A stretch of DNA of 64,000 nt, taken from positions 7,316,001 through 7,380,000 of the forward strand of contig CP075493.1 of assembly GCA_021613535.1 (NCBI GenBank), written 5' to 3'. The stretch comes from Adineta vaga (taxonomy: Eukaryota; Animalia; Rotifera). Below are positions 28,382-36,600 of this stretch, in pieces. How positions within the stretch are numbered: the first letter of the stretch is position 1; each line of letters begins with the position of its first letter. Position numbers and translations under genes: made by a program. The notes under the pieces are model-generated. The model worked only from the letters and a program-made list of their open reading frames with translations, was not told where the DNA came from and ran no database searches.

Positions 28382-29597
28382 GATTAAATTCTTCTAATCC
28401 TAAGATAGAGTCGAATCCAGATGTATGTTCATTCAGCCATATTTGAATTCTATTCAAATAGGTATCGGTGCAACTGACTATTGAACTTCAATTCAATTGA
28501 TCGATTTTTTATGTGAATATTCAGAGACTAGTTTAAAATGATTGAATCCTTTATTTTTTTTTCTTTATAGAAGTAAAATAATATATAAATAAATATGACG
28601 ATAGGTGTCACTACATGAGATGTGATGTGATAGTTAAGAACGCGTTCAGAAAGAAACAAAATGTTAATGAAAATTTCATTGATATTTTCACAGAAAACTC
28701 AAAAGCCCAATAGGCGATTTAACAAGAGCTTGAATAAATATTTTATTCTCAGATTTTTCTCTTTTCCAAAAGACGTTTCATTATTACAATGCTTGTATTG
28801 AAATAGTTCTGATGTCATGACGTTATTTAAAAAAAATACTATTGCTATTTTCATTATAGTAGCTATGCTTACGTAGGCATTTCTGAAACAGATATACTTC
28901 AACTATAACAAGAAAAAAAATGTGTCATTTCATTCGCTCATATGAAAATAGAGATCAAAACACTAATTTTTATTTTAACGACAAAGTATCCCATTGATGT
29001 TTTTTGGTATTTTATATCGTAGATCTACTGAAAAGATAACAGTATTAACTATTCTCCAATCAACGTATTCCTGGCATTTTGTAAATATTTGAAAATGCTC
29101 ATTTATACACAGAAGTGACTTTAAAACACACTGATGCAATCACAGATTCAACAAAGGCTATAATTTTTCTTCAACTAACGTCATAGCACGTTAGACATAC
29201 ATGCAGGGAAAAGGTTAGATTGATTATTTCTTTTTGAAATCACATGCATTCCTCAACAAGACTAGCGCCAAAAAGTTATCGCATAGCAACTATGGACTCA
29301 TTAGAATGAAGTCAGATAATCCCTATAGCAACCTTGTAAACAAATTCAAGAAAAAATGTGTCATTATAAGGTGTGTTTTGCCCATCTTGCCTCTATCTTT
29401 TTTCTTTCTTCTTTTAAAATTATTCCATGTCTTCAAGCTTCGTAATGCTTATTCATTCATTCTCTTTCTCCGCTCTTTCTTTCATATATAAATAGCGAGT
29501 AGCAGCATACAAATAAGTAAAGAAAATAACAAGGAAAAAGAAGGAAAGAAACAATCAAAAATCGAGAACTTTTAACGTACGACAAGGTCAATTTCAA

Positions 29598-30342
29598 ATG
29601 CCAGTAAGAAGATATGCTGTGTTACAAAAGTTTTTCATCTCCTTATTTTTGTTCTAGCCAAAATCGAATAAATTAACCAATCATCAAATGAAAGGTAAGT
29701 TATTTCAAATTAAAATTTTATCAATCTATTCTTTTCTTGAATATTAGAATTACGTGATGCATTTGATATGTTCGATCGGGATCATAGTGGATCAATATCT
29801 TCATCCGAATTGAAACAATTATTACAAGCATTGAATTTTAAAACAAACGAAAGTCTTATACGAAAAGTAATGAAAGAAATGGATGCCGATGGTATGTAAA
29901 TATTCCATCTACAGACATGAACAAAAATTCGTTCATTCGTTATTTTCTAGGTAATGGTACTAGTAAGTGTTTGATTGTTCTTCTGAAAATATAAATGTTC
30001 TTTTTCTTATGTTTGTTTCTGTAGTTGAATTTAATGAATTTGTGAAAGTAATGAGTAGTGTCTATACACGAAAACTTAATGATGATGAAATGCGTCGAGC
30101 ATTCAAATGTTTTGATAAAGACGATTCTGGTAGATTGAATTTTGAAATGAAAATATATTCACACTTGGTTTTTGTATTACTTCAAAGGTTTTATTACTCG
30201 AGAAGAACTACGTAATGTTCTTAAACAATTGAATCAAACCATTAGTGAAAAACGGATTACAGAAGTTTTCAAAACAGTGGATGATGATGGAGATGGAAAA
30301 ATTAGTTATGAAGAATTCGCAGCTATGTTACAAGATTCATAA
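29598..30342 (+). CDS. Calmodulin-like four-EF-hand protein
   Basis: Spliced translation gives EF loops DRDHSGSISSSE, DADGNGTIEFNE, DKDDSGFITREE and DDDGDGKISYEE. Too divergent to be true calmodulin. Confidence 0.92.
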
Positions 30343-31695
30343 CAAAGGTTTTGTCAATAAACTATATATATACATTTTTGTAGTTATATCCGTTCTTTTT
30401 TTTGTGTCAATACTATTGTGTGTTAATATATGAAATTTCTAATAAATATTGAAAATTTTACTGAATGACATAAACGAAAATCGTCGATGTGACAGATGAA
30501 TGAGGAGTAAATACAATAATATTTCTTTTGAAGTTTGTGTAGTATGTGTCATGAATTTGTCCGTATTGAAGAACATTCCATTCGTGACTTGAAAACGAAC
30601 TCGAAGAACAAACATACATGTTAATAAACCATAAAAATAGTACACAAATACTTGTATTTACTTTTACTTTTCTACGAACAATTATTTCGATGAATTTGTA
30701 TGACAGATTAAACTCATGGATACCGACAAATCTTGCGTTCTGTATTAAAATACAATGATCTTCTATATTAATTCTGCACATATCACATGTTTATCTGTAC
30801 GAAAGAACGAAAAAACAATTTCGTAGTGTACAATATTTCTAACAATTGTCGAATGGGTGGGTACTTCCAATGATGAACAAGTTCGTGTAATTATTTTGAA
30901 GGTATACTTGAATTCAACTTTCAAGTATTACACCTATGTAATTCTATTTTTGATTTCTGTCAAAGTTGAGTTATTCCAACAGAGAATATCATACGATTGA
31001 CTTTTCACTATACTGTTATGATTTCATTGGAACTATACTCACTCTCAAAACGTTCTGTCTTGAGTGACTTATAGAATATTTGTAAGTAAAGATTTTCGAT
31101 AGTTTCAAGAACATAGCATTTAAATATACAATCTAATCTGATTTGACAAGATCCTTTCATATGATTTTATCAACAGCACTTCATTTTGTACACATTATTT
31201 GAACAACAAATACATATAAATCCAATAAAGCCGTGTTATCATTACGATCGAATATAGATTTTCAACTAAACTGCTCAAAAGTGAATTATGATCAGTATAT
31301 ATGGGATTCGCTGAGATAAGATGTTATTTTTTTTACACTGAAAGCAAAAAACGAAATCTTTATTATTGCTTACATCTCCCAAAGGATATTATTGTACAGT
31401 TTGTTCATTTCGTCTTTCTTTTCAATCTTATCATTATCGATTTTTGAAAATATCAGCAGCTTTTATCCTGAACATGTGATTGTCCTAATTTCTGTGTTAA
31501 AAATGAACCTAACTTGACGGTCCCGCTCGTGTCGAAGTGATCAATGAGAGAGGTTCGAGTAAACTCAATTCAGCCTCACCAATCTTTTCATTTTCATTCG
31601 GGAATGAAAGAAATTAATCTCACGTTCTTCATTTCATTTTTTGTTTGATTTCGCAATGCAGAGGAGTGATGATTGTTATTTTCATTAAAAGAAAA

Positions 31696-31800
31696 GTGTT
31701 GCTCTGGCAGATCAGTGTTGCCACCGATCCGCACGATTTCGTCATCGCAACATGTATTTAATCCGCAAGGATATTTACCTCTTGGTAAGTTGTAATAAGC
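31696..31800 (-). ncRNA. Spliced leader (SL) RNA gene, copy A
   Basis: The minus strand reads GCTTATTACAACTTACCAAGAG|GTAAAT, matching the recalled bdelloid SL exon (GGCUUAUUACAACUUACCAAGAG) followed by a splice donor. Identity to copy B covers 105 nt up to a T-run, matching the recalled SL RNA length of 105-106 nt. Confidence 0.92.
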
Positions 31801-31816
31801 AATCTGTTTTCACGAC

Positions 31817-31918
31817 GTGTGGAGCAAAACGTTTTCGTTGTCTCTACATTTATTGTTTTGGAAGAAGCAAACGAAAGAGTGCAAAGTGTAGAGACAGCAT
31901 AGATGTCGTGCTCCACAC
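31817..31918. promoter_or_regulatory. Back-to-back bipartite snRNA-type promoters of the two SL RNA genes
   Basis: TGTAGAGACA at -48..-39 and TGCTCCACAC at -26..-17 are identical and identically spaced upstream of both copies (31887-31896 and 31909-31918 on +; 31839-31848 and 31817-31826 on -). The sequence between them has diverged. Confidence 0.75.
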
Positions 31919-31934
31919 ATCTCTCAGACAAATT

Positions 31935-32039
31935 GCTTATTACAACTTACCAAGAGGTAAATATCCTTGTGGATTAAATACATGTTGCGATGACGAAATC
32001 GTGCGGATTGGTGGCATCACTGATCTGCCAGAGCAACAC
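31935..32039 (+). ncRNA. Spliced leader (SL) RNA gene, copy B
   Basis: SL exon 31935-31956 GCTTATTACAACTTACCAAGAG, donor GT at 31957. Three differences from copy A, two in loops and one C-G to U-G. Confidence 0.92.
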
Positions 32040-32649
32040 TTTCATTTAAAATAAAATTGACATCTATTCAAATGGAATGTTACTGAGTAATAACCTGGTT
32101 GGTACCTATCGGCTAAAGAACAATGTGTTTGAATGTAGATGATTGATGTAGGTAATATCTGTTAGAAGTATAATGACTATCAAAATTCATTAAACACGCC
32201 TATACGAGATTTTGTGATAAAGGCCATAGATAAGATGTCGCTTTAATCTTGAGGGTGTGGAAGATTACAGACATTGGTTGCGAGACGGCTCAGTCGAAGT
32301 CAGTAACTTGAATATATTTTCTGAATAAATTGATCAAATATATAATCAATAATAAATATCTCTCTTTATGTGGAAAACTGACATCAAATGTTTCTTCGAA
32401 AGTAAAGAGAAAACGTTTGTTGTTAACATCTAAAACTTCACGTGATAAGTTTTGAATAAATGAAAAAACGAATAACTCGATAAAAGTAAACTTTCTGTTT
32501 GTCATAAAATTTGTTTTCAAAATAAAAAATTCATTTGGAATTAAATTTTATCAGATAAGTTCTCTTCTGAAAAACAGTTCTATAGTAAAAAGTAACAAAT
32601 CTTAATCGTATATTTTCTACTACTACTACCTCCATTAATACACCACAAT

Positions 32650-32963
32650 ATGAAGTATTAATCAAACTCGTGAAATGCTTATTATCTTTATCTCATGACA
32701 ACAGTGAGTTCGAAAGAGAACTTGATGCTGTATATGAACGATTAGAAGAAAAAGAAACTCAATCGATAAACAAACAAACAAAAGAATTGACTAGAGCAAC
32801 TAAAATGTTCGACGAGGAAACCACAAAATTTGCCACAGCTACGAAAAATAGAACATTTGATGGTATCAGTACAGTCGAAGTACTGATGAGAGATGATAAT
32901 GCTAAATTTGTTGGTTTCAAAACTGAATTAATTAAGAAAAGAACAGGAAAAATAAGTGATTGA
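32650..32963 (+). CDS. Small hydrophilic orphan protein (~87 aa, 2 exons)
   Basis: ATG AA|gtatta...caacag|T: a 50-nt intron (32655-32704) joins in frame to ORF 32670..32963, giving MNEFERELDAVYERLEEKETQ...KISD*. Confidence 0.5.
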
Positions 32964-33674
32964 AATAGATGTTTTGAACGTTATCTCTCATTTTTCTGTA
33001 AATACTCTAAACATATTTTTTGTATAAATTTTAAGAATGGAAGGAGTGAAATAACAGACAAATTTGTAGCTATCGAAACTTACTTCCTATGGAAATAGAT
33101 CGTAAAATACTAGGAGAAAATCAGGAAACCAAGCATGCTAACAAGCCTGCTGATAGTATAAATGAAAATAATTTGACGATCTCATGAATAACAAAATATC
33201 CAATGTGAGATAGAAATGAGCTCTAGAGTCGGATAAGAACTCAAGATAATGTATTCTCTTCTCTTCTCTTTGTGTGCTGTCCGCCTCATCTTCTCATAGA
33301 TGAATGCAAAACAAAAATTACTTTTACCGTCTTATATGATTAGACTACCATATATAAACGTACTTTTACTTGTCATTCAGTCAATATTCATCTGAGAATA
33401 GTGAACTGTTCCACACTATTTTAAAATGATATATATTTTTTTGAGTTTCTTCTTCTCTATGCATTTATATGATGAAGGATTGTTTTGCCGGAACACAAAT
33501 GACTAATTCACCATATACATGTCTAATACAGACGTCTATTGTTTACCTCACTATGGTGAGGGATACAGCCCGGTTAGTGTTTTTAAAACAGTGAGCAGAG
33601 TTTCTCTGTACGCGTACGATTTATTTATCTGTTAGTTTTCTTTTTATTACAAGATAAATAAAATAACACACGAG

Positions 33675-36600
33675 TCATAATTTCTTTTTCATGTCTGCGA
33701 GGTTTTTTCTATACATTCGAAGATCAGGATGTCCTGAAGGCAATGATTGTTGTGCAATTTGTACAGCACGCTCATAAAATGAACCGGCTTTTGAATAGTT
33801 CTTCATGTCTTCATACACCACACCGATGTTGTTGCAAGATGCAGCCAAATCAGGATGATTTGGTGGTAGTGAGTTTTGTCGAATTGCAAGGGCTTTTTCG
33901 TGAAATGAAAGTGCTTTTGTATAGTTAACCATGTTGTAATGCACCAGAGCAATGTTGTTGTAAGATGCAGCCAAACTCGGATGATTTGGAGGAAGTGATT
34001 GTTGATCAATTGCAAGAGATTTCTCATAATATGAAAGTGCTTTTGAATAGTCACCCTTGTTGTCATACACCAAACCGATATTGTTGAAAGATGAAGCCAA
34101 ATCAGGATGATTTGGAAGAAGTGATTGTTGTCGAATTGCAAGGGCTTTTTCATGAGATGAAAGTGCTTTTGAATAGTCACCCATTTCGTCATACATCAAA
34201 CCGATATTGTTGTAAGATAAAGCCAAATCAGGATGATTTGGAAGAAGTGATTGTTGTCGAATTGCAAGGGCTTTCTCATGAGATGAAAGTGCTCTTGGAT
34301 AGTCACCCATCTTGGAATACACCAAACCAATGTTGTTGTAAGATGAAGCCAAATCCGGATGATTTGGAGAAAGTGTTTGTTGTTTGATTGCAAGAGCTTT
34401 TTCTTGAGATGAAAGTGCTTTTGGATAGTCACCCATGCTGGAATACACTGCACCGATGTTGTTGTAAGATGCAGCCAAATCAGGATCTTTAGGAGAAAGA
34501 ATTTTTTCCTCGATGGCAAGTGTTTTTTCATAGAATCTAACTGCCTCTTCATATTCTCCTCGATTGTATTTGATGGAACCAAGTTGACTATAAATTGGTG
34601 CCTTTTCACTCTCCTTCGTTGTTTGATCAAGCAGCATTTCATAAATCTCTTCAGCCTTCTCATTTTGACCCAATTTCTTTAGCACTAAACCCAATCTGTA
34701 CCATCCTCTCGAGTCTGGAAAACTCTCTTCTCGTATGCGCTCAGTTAGTGCATGTAGTTCCTTGTCATTATCACTGGTCAATGTCAAACTAACTTCGAAG
34801 AGTTTGTTATTTCCATCCATTTGTTTGAAATTCTGAGTTCGAAACACGCTGTGCATTGAAAATAGCACTTCATCTTCATCCTCAATGGCACTATGATCAC
34901 GAATTGATGCAAATGATGTTGTTGATTGTTTTGGATCAATTTTTATTACAAACAAAATTGCCACCAAATCTGGATTACTTAGATTTTCTTTTGCAAACCT
35001 GAGTGAAACATTTTTCTCCTTGCTAGTGGATAAGAAATTGTTAAAGGACATGAGTCCACCTTTAGTTTTCTTTAATTGTTCGAAATCTGCGATGGATACG
35101 CCTTGTCCACGATAAACTGTGAAAATTTTATCCATGTGTTGTTCTTCATGCACGGATTTGATGTGTCGATGTAGATCGTTGATAAAGAAGCCCATCCGTG
35201 TCATGATGTCACCATCCATCGTTCTGATTCCACGATTGAGCATGCGATAAAAGAAGCATTCATAGGTGTACCACCAGATAGGTTTTTCCTGATGATATTT
35301 GCGTTCCAATAGTTTCACTTTCTCTAATTCTTCGTCGTTATCGATGAAAAGTTCACGACAGTAATGAACGTAATCCTGAATATGTGCATCGTCGAATTCG
35401 ATGGTCAATAAGATCTCCTTGAGGATCTGGGTGTACATGAAAGAAGGATCTAATTGATCCAACTTTTTGTCAGATGCCACGAAACTGATGGAAGCGGCAT
35501 TTTGTTCACATTGTGCTACAGGGTATAGCAAAATTATAGACCCCTCATACACATGCATACGAAAATCGTTATTTTATTTCAGCAATAAGAGATGGCGGTC
35601 AACCAATGGCATAGGAGTGCGTGGGTACACATGTACTATCTACCAATCTAACATCGTATTTCCGTTCGCTGATAGTGGAAGAAAAAAATACAAATCAGTG
35701 AAAACTTGCTGTACCATAATTATAGGCCCCCTATACGAAAAATACATTTCTCGATTTTCTAGAGTTGATCATCAGGCGATTTCTGAAAATTTGTTCGATA
35801 ACAAATAACGTTCTATCTATTTCTCTCACTTTGAGATATGGTTGGTCAAAGTTATGGCGCAGATTCTCGTTATTATGAGTTTTACTGGTGGCTTATAACT
35901 AACTACGTGATCTTGATCAGAATATCATTTTTTCGTAATTTTGATTTGTTCAGAACTAGTCCGATAGATGTGTTTACTCTAGATAGCATCGCCCTGATTG
36001 AAACTATGTTGATTAAAGATCAATTTGATAGAGTTTGAGAAGATAGCTATCGTGGTACCCCATAGCTATGTAGACTGTTCCTTAAAAAGTCGCAGAATTT
36101 CATGACTAGTTGAACCGATGACTCCAGTCTAATGGTATAGTTAGAGAGAGCATATCAAGTTGTACAAGAATATCAACAAATATAATACAGGAAAGCAGTC
36201 CTCAGAATAAAGATTGATGACGTCGAAGATTAACTAGTTTCACCCGATATATGCATATGGAGGCAACAGAAAATTTGTTTATATAATTTTGATACACTGA
36301 TTCCGGCGGACTCTATACACTTTTTCAGACACCTCTTTGATTATGAATCTCAGTAAAGTAGGAAAAATCCAGTTTCCTTCTTCATGAGTTACTATAACAC
36401 AATCAGACGACAGTAGTTAATTTTGCATAAGTTTAGTAATTAGCCAATCTTCGACGTCATCAATCTTTATTCTGAGGACTGCTTTCCTGTATTATATTTG
36501 TTGATATTCTTGTACAACTTGATACGCTCTCTCTAACTATACCATTAGATTGAATTGGTTGCTTCAACTAGTCATAAAATTCTGCGACTTTCTAACGAAC

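Follow-up and report, generated by a model that had tools for sequence, protein, structure and literature searches.

Organisation of the locus

The window analysed in this study is a 64-kb stretch of DNA from Adineta vaga (C1:7316001-7380000). A repeat search of the window revealed an inverted repeat with arms of 174 nt each at 31678-31851 and 31884-32057, which are 87% complementary and lie 32 nt apart. The sequence GCTTATTACAACTTACCAAGAG, which forms the exon of a spliced-leader (SL) RNA gene, has exactly two exact copies in the window, at 31935-31956 on the forward strand and at 31779-31800 on the reverse strand, one in each arm. In both arms GTAAAT stands directly 3' of the exon, placing a 5' splice donor (GU) right after it, and about 83 nt then lead to a T-run. 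The repeat search and the exact exon matches thus confirmed the 344-bp inverted repeat, with arms starting with the exon and GTAAAT, that had been reported in an earlier note on this DNA.

The left gene (31692-31800, reverse strand) is composed of a 22-nt exon (31779-31800), a GT donor (31777-31778), a structured 3' part reaching to 31696 and a T-run at 31692-31695. The right gene (31935-32042, forward strand) has its exon at 31935-31956, its GT donor at 31957-31958, a structured 3' part reaching to 32039 and a T-run at 32040-32042; at this 3' end there is TTT only, then C, then ATTT. The two 5' ends are separated by a spacer of 134 nt (31801-31934), a proposed bidirectional promoter whose length is fixed in other pairs and whose sequence is conserved among paralogous loci. 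The 344-bp palindrome very probably represents two divergent bdelloid SL RNA genes arranged around this shared promoter spacer.

Alignment of the arms showed three differences in the transcribed part of about 105 nt, at RNA positions 36, 75 and 83 (31970, 32009 and 32017 in the right arm; 31765, 31726 and 31718 in the left arm), the right gene carrying U36/U75/U83 and the left gene C36/C75/A83. Arm identity drops beyond the T-run, at 32040-32042 on the forward and 31692-31695 on the reverse strand, in agreement with the previously noted arm identity over about 105 nt that ends at a T-run.

Identity with the published bdelloid leader

The published bdelloid leader is GGCTTATTACAACTTACCAAGAG, a 23-mer (PMC3795323, Table 1), and all 22 encoded bases of the window exon are identical to it, which corresponds to 22 of the 23 bases of the published leader. 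As summarised in PMC1925144, bdelloid SL RNAs are about 100 nt long, and in two bdelloid families more than 50% of transcripts bear their 23-nt exon. The original description, as cited in PMC1925144 and PMC3795323, was made in Adineta ricciae and Philodina sp. (Pouchkina-Stantcheva & Tunnacliffe 2005, Mol Biol Evol 22:1482). The window genes resemble the SL RNA of those species in the exon (22 encoded bases), the GU donor and the length of about 105 nt, and their role as leader donor for more than half of bdelloid mRNAs is taken here from the bdelloid literature.

A difference lies at the 5' end: the published 23-mer starts with GG, whereas its first G is unencoded in the genomic copies found here. 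Among the 223 copies with upstream sequence, from this genome and from metagenome loci, the base preceding the exon is T in 216, C in 7 and G in none. The published 23-nt exon therefore holds for 22 of its bases and fails for the first G; this extra 5' G, encoded in 0 of the 223 copies, probably stems from the cap or the way the leader was cloned. PMC3795323 is itself inconsistent on the leader, which contains AACTTACC in the main Table 1 and AACCTACC in supplementary files 2-3; the AACTTACC of Table 1 is backed by the base composition stated in that paper (6 T, 5 C) and by every genomic copy.

Searches with Rfam gave no match to an SL family at E<=10 on 31000-32800, and none at gathering score over the whole window. 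Rfam miRNA and snoRNA matches around the locus were dismissed as chance matches caused by the palindrome. The SLIDR paper and a 2025 chaetognath paper contain nothing on rotifer SL genes.

The SL RNA family and its predicted fold

The genome searched comprises 100.8 Mb in six contigs. With up to two mismatches allowed, the exon followed by GTAA was matched 59 times, compared with 0 matches for the reversed control, and chance is therefore excluded. Every exact exon core TTATTACAACTTACCAAGAG in the genome precedes G, and none precedes A, C or T; retro-copied trans-spliced mRNAs, in which the exon would lack the following G, were sought and none was present in the genome. A metagenome scan additionally found exact matches to the 26-mer in 93 contigs. 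In total 225 copies were collected, 203 of them with the invariant intron core, and a covariance model (R1) was built from 150 distinct sequences. R1 gave 85 matches in the genome; the left window copy, with 127.1 bits, comes 3rd among them, and the right copy, with 123.1 bits, 12th. A chimeric or truncated subfamily was also noted at L132:1152-1263 (reverse strand), L134:4037-4148 (forward) and L136:1196-1307 (forward); in these copies the exon and the initial ~40 nt are retained, after which all continue into a common unrelated A/T-rich sequence (ATTTTGAATTGAAAAACAAAC...).

Minimum free energy (MFE) folding gave the same structure for both arms, at -34.2 kcal/mol for the left RNA (z -4.23) and -31.1 kcal/mol for the right RNA (z -3.02). 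In this predicted fold, hairpin 1 (UUACC/GGUAA) encloses the AG|GU junction, hairpin 2 (AUCC/GGAU) is small and variable, and a closing helix, (U)GUUGC/GCAAC(A) with G-A/A-G after it, encloses a weak 3-bp hairpin and an 11-bp hairpin. Two of the differing positions are final loop bases, 36 in hairpin 2 (AUCC-UUGY-GGAU) and 83 in the GCAU/GCAA loop, and the third, 75, forms a U-G or a C-G pair in the 11-bp stem. All three arm differences are thus predicted to leave the RNA structure intact, and they sit in it exactly as the earlier note had described.

The fold is supported by covariation among the 150 distinct sequences. Paired cells make up 91.6%, compared with 27-50% when the partners are slid by 1-3 columns, and changes on both sides of a pair were counted in 358 cells, compared with 32-81 in the slid controls; such changes occur in 22 of 32 pairs, and none of 500 shuffles reached any of the observed measures. 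Most of the covariation is held by the long 3' hairpin (for example AU:68/GC:60 and UA:50/CG:48), which RNAalifold recovered independently, and the 3-bp hairpin is weak (79% paired). Hairpin 1 and the closing helix vary hardly at all and are therefore neutral evidence on the fold, neither for nor against it.

The core GUUGCGAUGACGAAA ... CCAGAGCAAC is invariant in the canonical SL RNA copies and lies at 31982-31998 and 32028-32037 in the window, and at the mirror positions. According to the predicted fold it makes up the closing helix and the adjoining G-A/A-G at a three-way junction. The possibility that this core is a k-turn (box C/D-like GAUGA...AGA) was considered and rejected, since Watson-Crick pairs flank the G-A/A-G on either side and a bulge of 3 nt is lacking. 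In 201 of the 203 canonical copies, both window genes included, no canonical Sm site (RAU3-6GR) occurs; a conserved single-stranded AAAUACAU or GACGAAAA may take its place. The missing canonical Sm site in both copies, and the TTT-only end of the right copy, are among the findings that speak against reading the locus as two SL RNA genes.

Paired arrangement in the genome and in metagenomes

Counting of copies and their orientation, as proposed in the earlier note, identified 21 exon-defined head-to-head pairs in the genome with a 5'-to-5' spacing of 133-134 nt, and R1 added about 10 pairs in which the partner has a divergent exon. In metagenomes there are 51 pairs with a spacer of 125-137 nt, 48 of which fall at 132-135. 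As the same layout occurs in independent metagenome assemblies, it is not an assembly artefact. The head-to-head pair is the standard unit of the SL gene family, so that the treatment of the paired layout as a peculiarity of this locus was not borne out; the pair at 31692-32042 is an ordinary copy of a known RNA gene in the family's normal arrangement.

The pairs are distributed unevenly. Chromosome 5 carries 9 pairs within 43 kb (9.884-9.926 Mb), chromosome 2 carries a cluster of SL genes that is linked to U2 genes, and further U2-linked SL clusters, with U2 within a few hundred nt, lie on chromosome 5 (10.91-10.93 Mb) and chromosome 6 (4.52-4.53 Mb). About 12 pairs are solitary and dispersed, the window pair among them. 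No 5S gene or other Rfam RNA was detected in the 64-kb window. The suggestion that the genes do not belong to a tandem or 5S-linked array is accordingly valid at the window locus, where 5S is absent, but does not extend to the family, given the 9 pairs in 43 kb on chromosome 5.

SL genes are also paired with U2 genes. Two SL/U2 head-to-head pairs across 131 nt were found at C2:8684694/8684826 and C2:8685484/8685616 (regions C2:8684584-8685022 and 8685374-8685811; L127/L143), and a third, across 133 nt, in metagenome contig L045 (8881-9321); the geometry of these pairs equals that of the SL/SL pairs. There is, moreover, a second class of SL gene, whose 24-nt exon, ACTTATTACAACTTACACCAAGAG, differs by an AC insertion and is followed by an otherwise conserved intron. 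Its copies include C5:10924169-10924282 (reverse strand) and 10928402-10928515 (forward) in L135, a copy in L134, and C6:4520288-4520404 (reverse) in L142, and most 24-nt-exon copies face, head-to-head across 115-134 nt, a GGTAT-donor variant of the 22-nt SL.

Arm divergence and the transposon alternative

A short AT-rich inverted repeat that is present at many loci, with copies scattered over five of the six chromosomes, has the general appearance of a MITE, and the palindrome could on this account be a MITE-like non-autonomous DNA transposon whose arms merely hold SL-like sequence. The distribution of the differences between the arms, however, does not fit such an element. The arms are alike only where they are transcribed: identity is 101/104 in the RNA (97%), whereas the half-spacers reach 44/70 and the 3' flank 17/27 (63% each; Fisher 2e-9 and 6e-6). 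The same pattern of selection was observed across 62 pairs, where the RNA has a median identity of 93-96% and the spacer one of 61-63%; in 60 of these pairs the RNA is the more conserved. Comparison of ten dispersed paralogous loci with one another gave mean pairwise identities of 92% and 82% (the two RNAs), 86.5% (spacer) and 57% (flanks). Although its halves are only 63% alike, the spacer is thus well preserved from locus to locus, which fits a functional asymmetric promoter and not terminal inverted repeats. The palindrome arises because two conserved RNA genes face away from each other, not from transposon terminal repeats.

The surroundings of the unit argue in the same direction. The sequences outside 31678 and 32057 differ, and no target-site duplication is present at these borders; the unit does occur at many loci, as the earlier note had considered for a transposon, but no duplications were found. 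Sequence shared by the dispersed loci extends asymmetrically into the flanks without fixed ends, the SL/U2 pairs use the same geometry although they are not palindromes, and the layout and the RNA covariation are conserved over many bdelloid species. Furthermore, of the joints listed, none in a contig of the DNA run X6 jumps over the unit. The window unit thus shares with MITEs the short AT-rich inverted-repeat shape and the high copy number, and differs from them in the missing target-site duplication, the arm identity confined to the transcribed parts, the lack of defined ends and the deep covarying conservation. A transposon origin of the palindrome, largely refuted by the uneven arm divergence and the lack of a target-site duplication, is considered extremely improbable.

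The resemblance matters in practice. Repeat maskers would probably hide the SL loci and no Rfam model finds them; consequently, annotation that relies on standard repeat masking and on Rfam would miss the genes from which most bdelloid mRNAs obtain their 5' end.

Putative promoter elements and polymerase

A putative snRNA-type external promoter is present upstream of both genes. In the right gene a PSE-like element, GTGTAGAGACA, lies at 31886-31896 on the forward strand (-49 to -39) and is the most conserved upstream block; in the left gene the arm alignment places its counterpart, ATGTAGAGACA, at 31839-31849 on the reverse strand (-39 to -49). A proximal block, AGATGTCGTGCTCCACAC, follows in the right gene at 31901-31918 on the forward strand (-34 to -17), and the arm alignment locates its mirror in the left gene at about 31817-31831 on the reverse strand. 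The consensus of 147 distinct exon-anchored upstream regions contains the blocks tGtGTAaaGACa at -48 to -38, agATGTCGTGCTCt at -34 to -20 and AAgTT at -5 to -1.

The U2 snRNA genes of the same genome have ATGTGTnnAGACA at about -50 to -38, AGTT just 5' of the start, and no TATA box. The motif ATGTGTnnAGACA, its distance and AGTT are common to the U2 and SL genes; the U2 genes differ in that their RNA product is unrelated to SL RNA and lacks a terminal T-run. U2 is an RNA polymerase II gene. A U2-like promoter without a TATA box suggests transcription by this enzyme, with the spacer acting as a bidirectional U2-like promoter.

Transcription by RNA polymerase III, as for U6, with termination at the T-run, would account for the run of at least four T that follows the last helix in most copies, and for the missing canonical Sm site. 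The U6 genes of this genome, however, are built differently: they have TTCACCG upstream, ATATATAAG at -30 and T8-9 terminators. The SL genes have no TATA box at -30, their upstream motif is that of U2 and not the U6 element, and the right window copy ends in TTT only. Polymerase III is for these reasons thought unlikely to read the SL genes.

An ATTCA(C/T)CG(T) element and a TATA-like box, unlike the U2/SL motif, are shared by the U6 genes and three weaker U1-model matches (L149-L160). In three of the U1-model matches CTACTGTGCAA is found upstream, and two U1-model matches lie head-to-head, 248 nt apart, at C6:4233946-4234518.

Proposed mechanism and comparison with nematode SL1

In the proposed mechanism, the spacer would carry one PSE-like element and one proximal block for each gene, and each gene would be read outward. 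Transcription would begin at the G after the conserved RTT and yield an RNA of about 105-108 nt, consisting in order of the 22-nt exon, the AG|GUAAAU junction within hairpin 1, hairpin 2, the single-stranded AAAUACAU, the three-way-junction domain, predicted to be closed by GUUGC/GCAAC with the adjacent G-A/A-G, the long covarying hairpin and the 3' end ACUUU(U). The exon would then be donated to pre-mRNA acceptor sites by trans-splicing. Within this scheme we infer the acting polymerase, the activity of the window locus and trans-splicing in Adineta vaga.

The SL1 genes of Caenorhabditis elegans are arranged divergently to 5S rRNA in a tandem repeat of about 1 kb, are transcribed by polymerase II from a PSE, and encode an Sm-binding RNA. 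The window genes are like nematode SL1 in the RNA of about 100 nt, the 22-nt exon, the pairing of the donor within hairpin 1, the snRNA-type upstream element and the divergent pairing with another small-RNA gene. They differ from it in several respects: they are paired with another SL gene (or U2) and not with 5S, the locus is solitary and not a tandem array, and the bdelloid copies have neither a canonical Sm site nor a match to an Rfam SL family, whereas nematode SL1 binds Sm.

A broader reading can be formulated for the family as a whole, and we rate its chances as about even. Throughout Bdelloidea, SL genes would lie almost only in divergent pairs on a bidirectional snRNA-type promoter of fixed length (about 133-134 nt), which drives SL/SL, SL/U2 and mixed two-class (22-nt and 24-nt exon) pairs, and their product, which has an invariant junction core in place of a canonical Sm site, may enter an unusual SL RNP. 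If this is true, pairing would couple the supply of the trans-splicing substrate to U2 and to the second leader. Divergent pairs, the fixed spacer and the U2 linkage are undescribed in the searchable literature, a scope that leaves out the 2005 primary paper; if true and unreported, they would constitute a new gene architecture for spliced-leader RNAs. This family-wide architecture, with its fixed spacer, U2 linkage, 24-nt class and missing canonical Sm site, is a more interesting result than the window locus. The covariance model, the count of 85 matches, the U2-shared promoter motif and the paired layout in many environmental bdelloids are new resources, which can serve the mapping of trans-splicing and possible operons in bdelloids, the question of how SL RNA and U2 output are coordinated, and a test of whether the second leader class marks a subset of genes.

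Expression data

Contigs over 29001-34999 from assembled sequencing runs were inspected. An EF-hand gene at 29569-30460 on the forward strand (Pfam EF-hand_1, E 7e-6), with GT..AG introns of 53-58 nt, is present with these introns removed in three runs guessed to be RNA; the spliced form occurs in those three runs and not in the DNA run X6, and the three runs therefore hold RNA. The only contig of the RNA-guessed runs (X3, X4) on the SL locus covers 31697-31783 with 2 mismatches and carries 100-123 nt of foreign flank, which places it at C5:9925948, a gene of the chromosome-5 cluster. Family transcription, or DNA carry-over, is thus visible for a chromosome-5 cluster copy only, and as Logan contigs collapse variants and lose small RNAs, this is weak evidence in both directions. 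No SL-to-acceptor joint over 29001-34999 was found among the joints listed. The description of the locus in the earlier note as two functional, divergently transcribed SL RNA genes was therefore right as to two divergent, intact members of the family, and overstated in the word functional, since no locus-specific transcript was seen.

Dispersed copies and the duplicated segment

The window locus lies inside a segment of about 0.6-1.2 kb that has been copied to about 12 places, which indicates that some duplicative spread has occurred. Its left flank at 31540-31691, part of the duplicated segment and not of the RNA, is common to about 9 other dispersed SL-pair loci, and the right flank at 32043-32085 is likewise common to other dispersed loci, with a further shared block at about 32200-32400. 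Overall, no fewer than nine of the dispersed loci have about 150 nt of one flank and 50 nt of the other in common, and about eight have a further block of about 200 nt; longer stretches of flank are common to subsets of the loci, with variable and asymmetric extents. The block GAGTAAACTCAATTCAG of the left flank was found at 10 loci of this genome and at 0 metagenome loci. The pair thus reached the window site inside a lineage-specific duplicated segment without fixed ends.

These observations raise the possibility that the window pair, intact as it looks, is silent or a relic, carried here in the duplicated 0.6-1.2 kb segment, while the clusters on chromosomes 5 and 2 supply the SL RNA. The sharing of flanks beyond the genes by about 12 dispersed loci would agree with this, as would the recurrence of a neighbouring segment of about 840 bp near three other pairs, the position of the closest paralogous copy of the EF-hand gene (C4:5.51 Mb) away from any SL pair, and the origin of the sole contig from the RNA-guessed runs in the chromosome-5 cluster. 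At many dispersed loci, moreover, the partner gene is degenerate, with a C9A exon or a broken hairpin 2. In the dispersed pairs L124, L128, L129, L136, L138 and L139, for example, one partner has the C9A exon GCTTATTAAAACTTACC and often a damaged hairpin 2; such copies represent either a minor leader variant or decay. Both window copies, by contrast, have perfect exons, donors and promoter motifs and top-ranking model scores, and the differences between them keep the structure intact. The spacer is also far better conserved over the dispersed loci than the flanks (82-86% versus 57%), which indicates continued selection. A silent window copy is consequently judged quite improbable, and we favour the reading of the pair as two intact SL RNA genes.

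The neighbouring segment of about 840 bp occupies 32720-33560 of the window and contains part of an ORF (32670-32963) whose only match, to SRP14, is non-significant (E 0.035). Copies of the segment that are 79-80% identical were found at C6:3854437, C4:14061503 and C4:2219239, each situated 3-7 kb from another SL pair, and a 260-bp sub-part of it occurs at three more sites.
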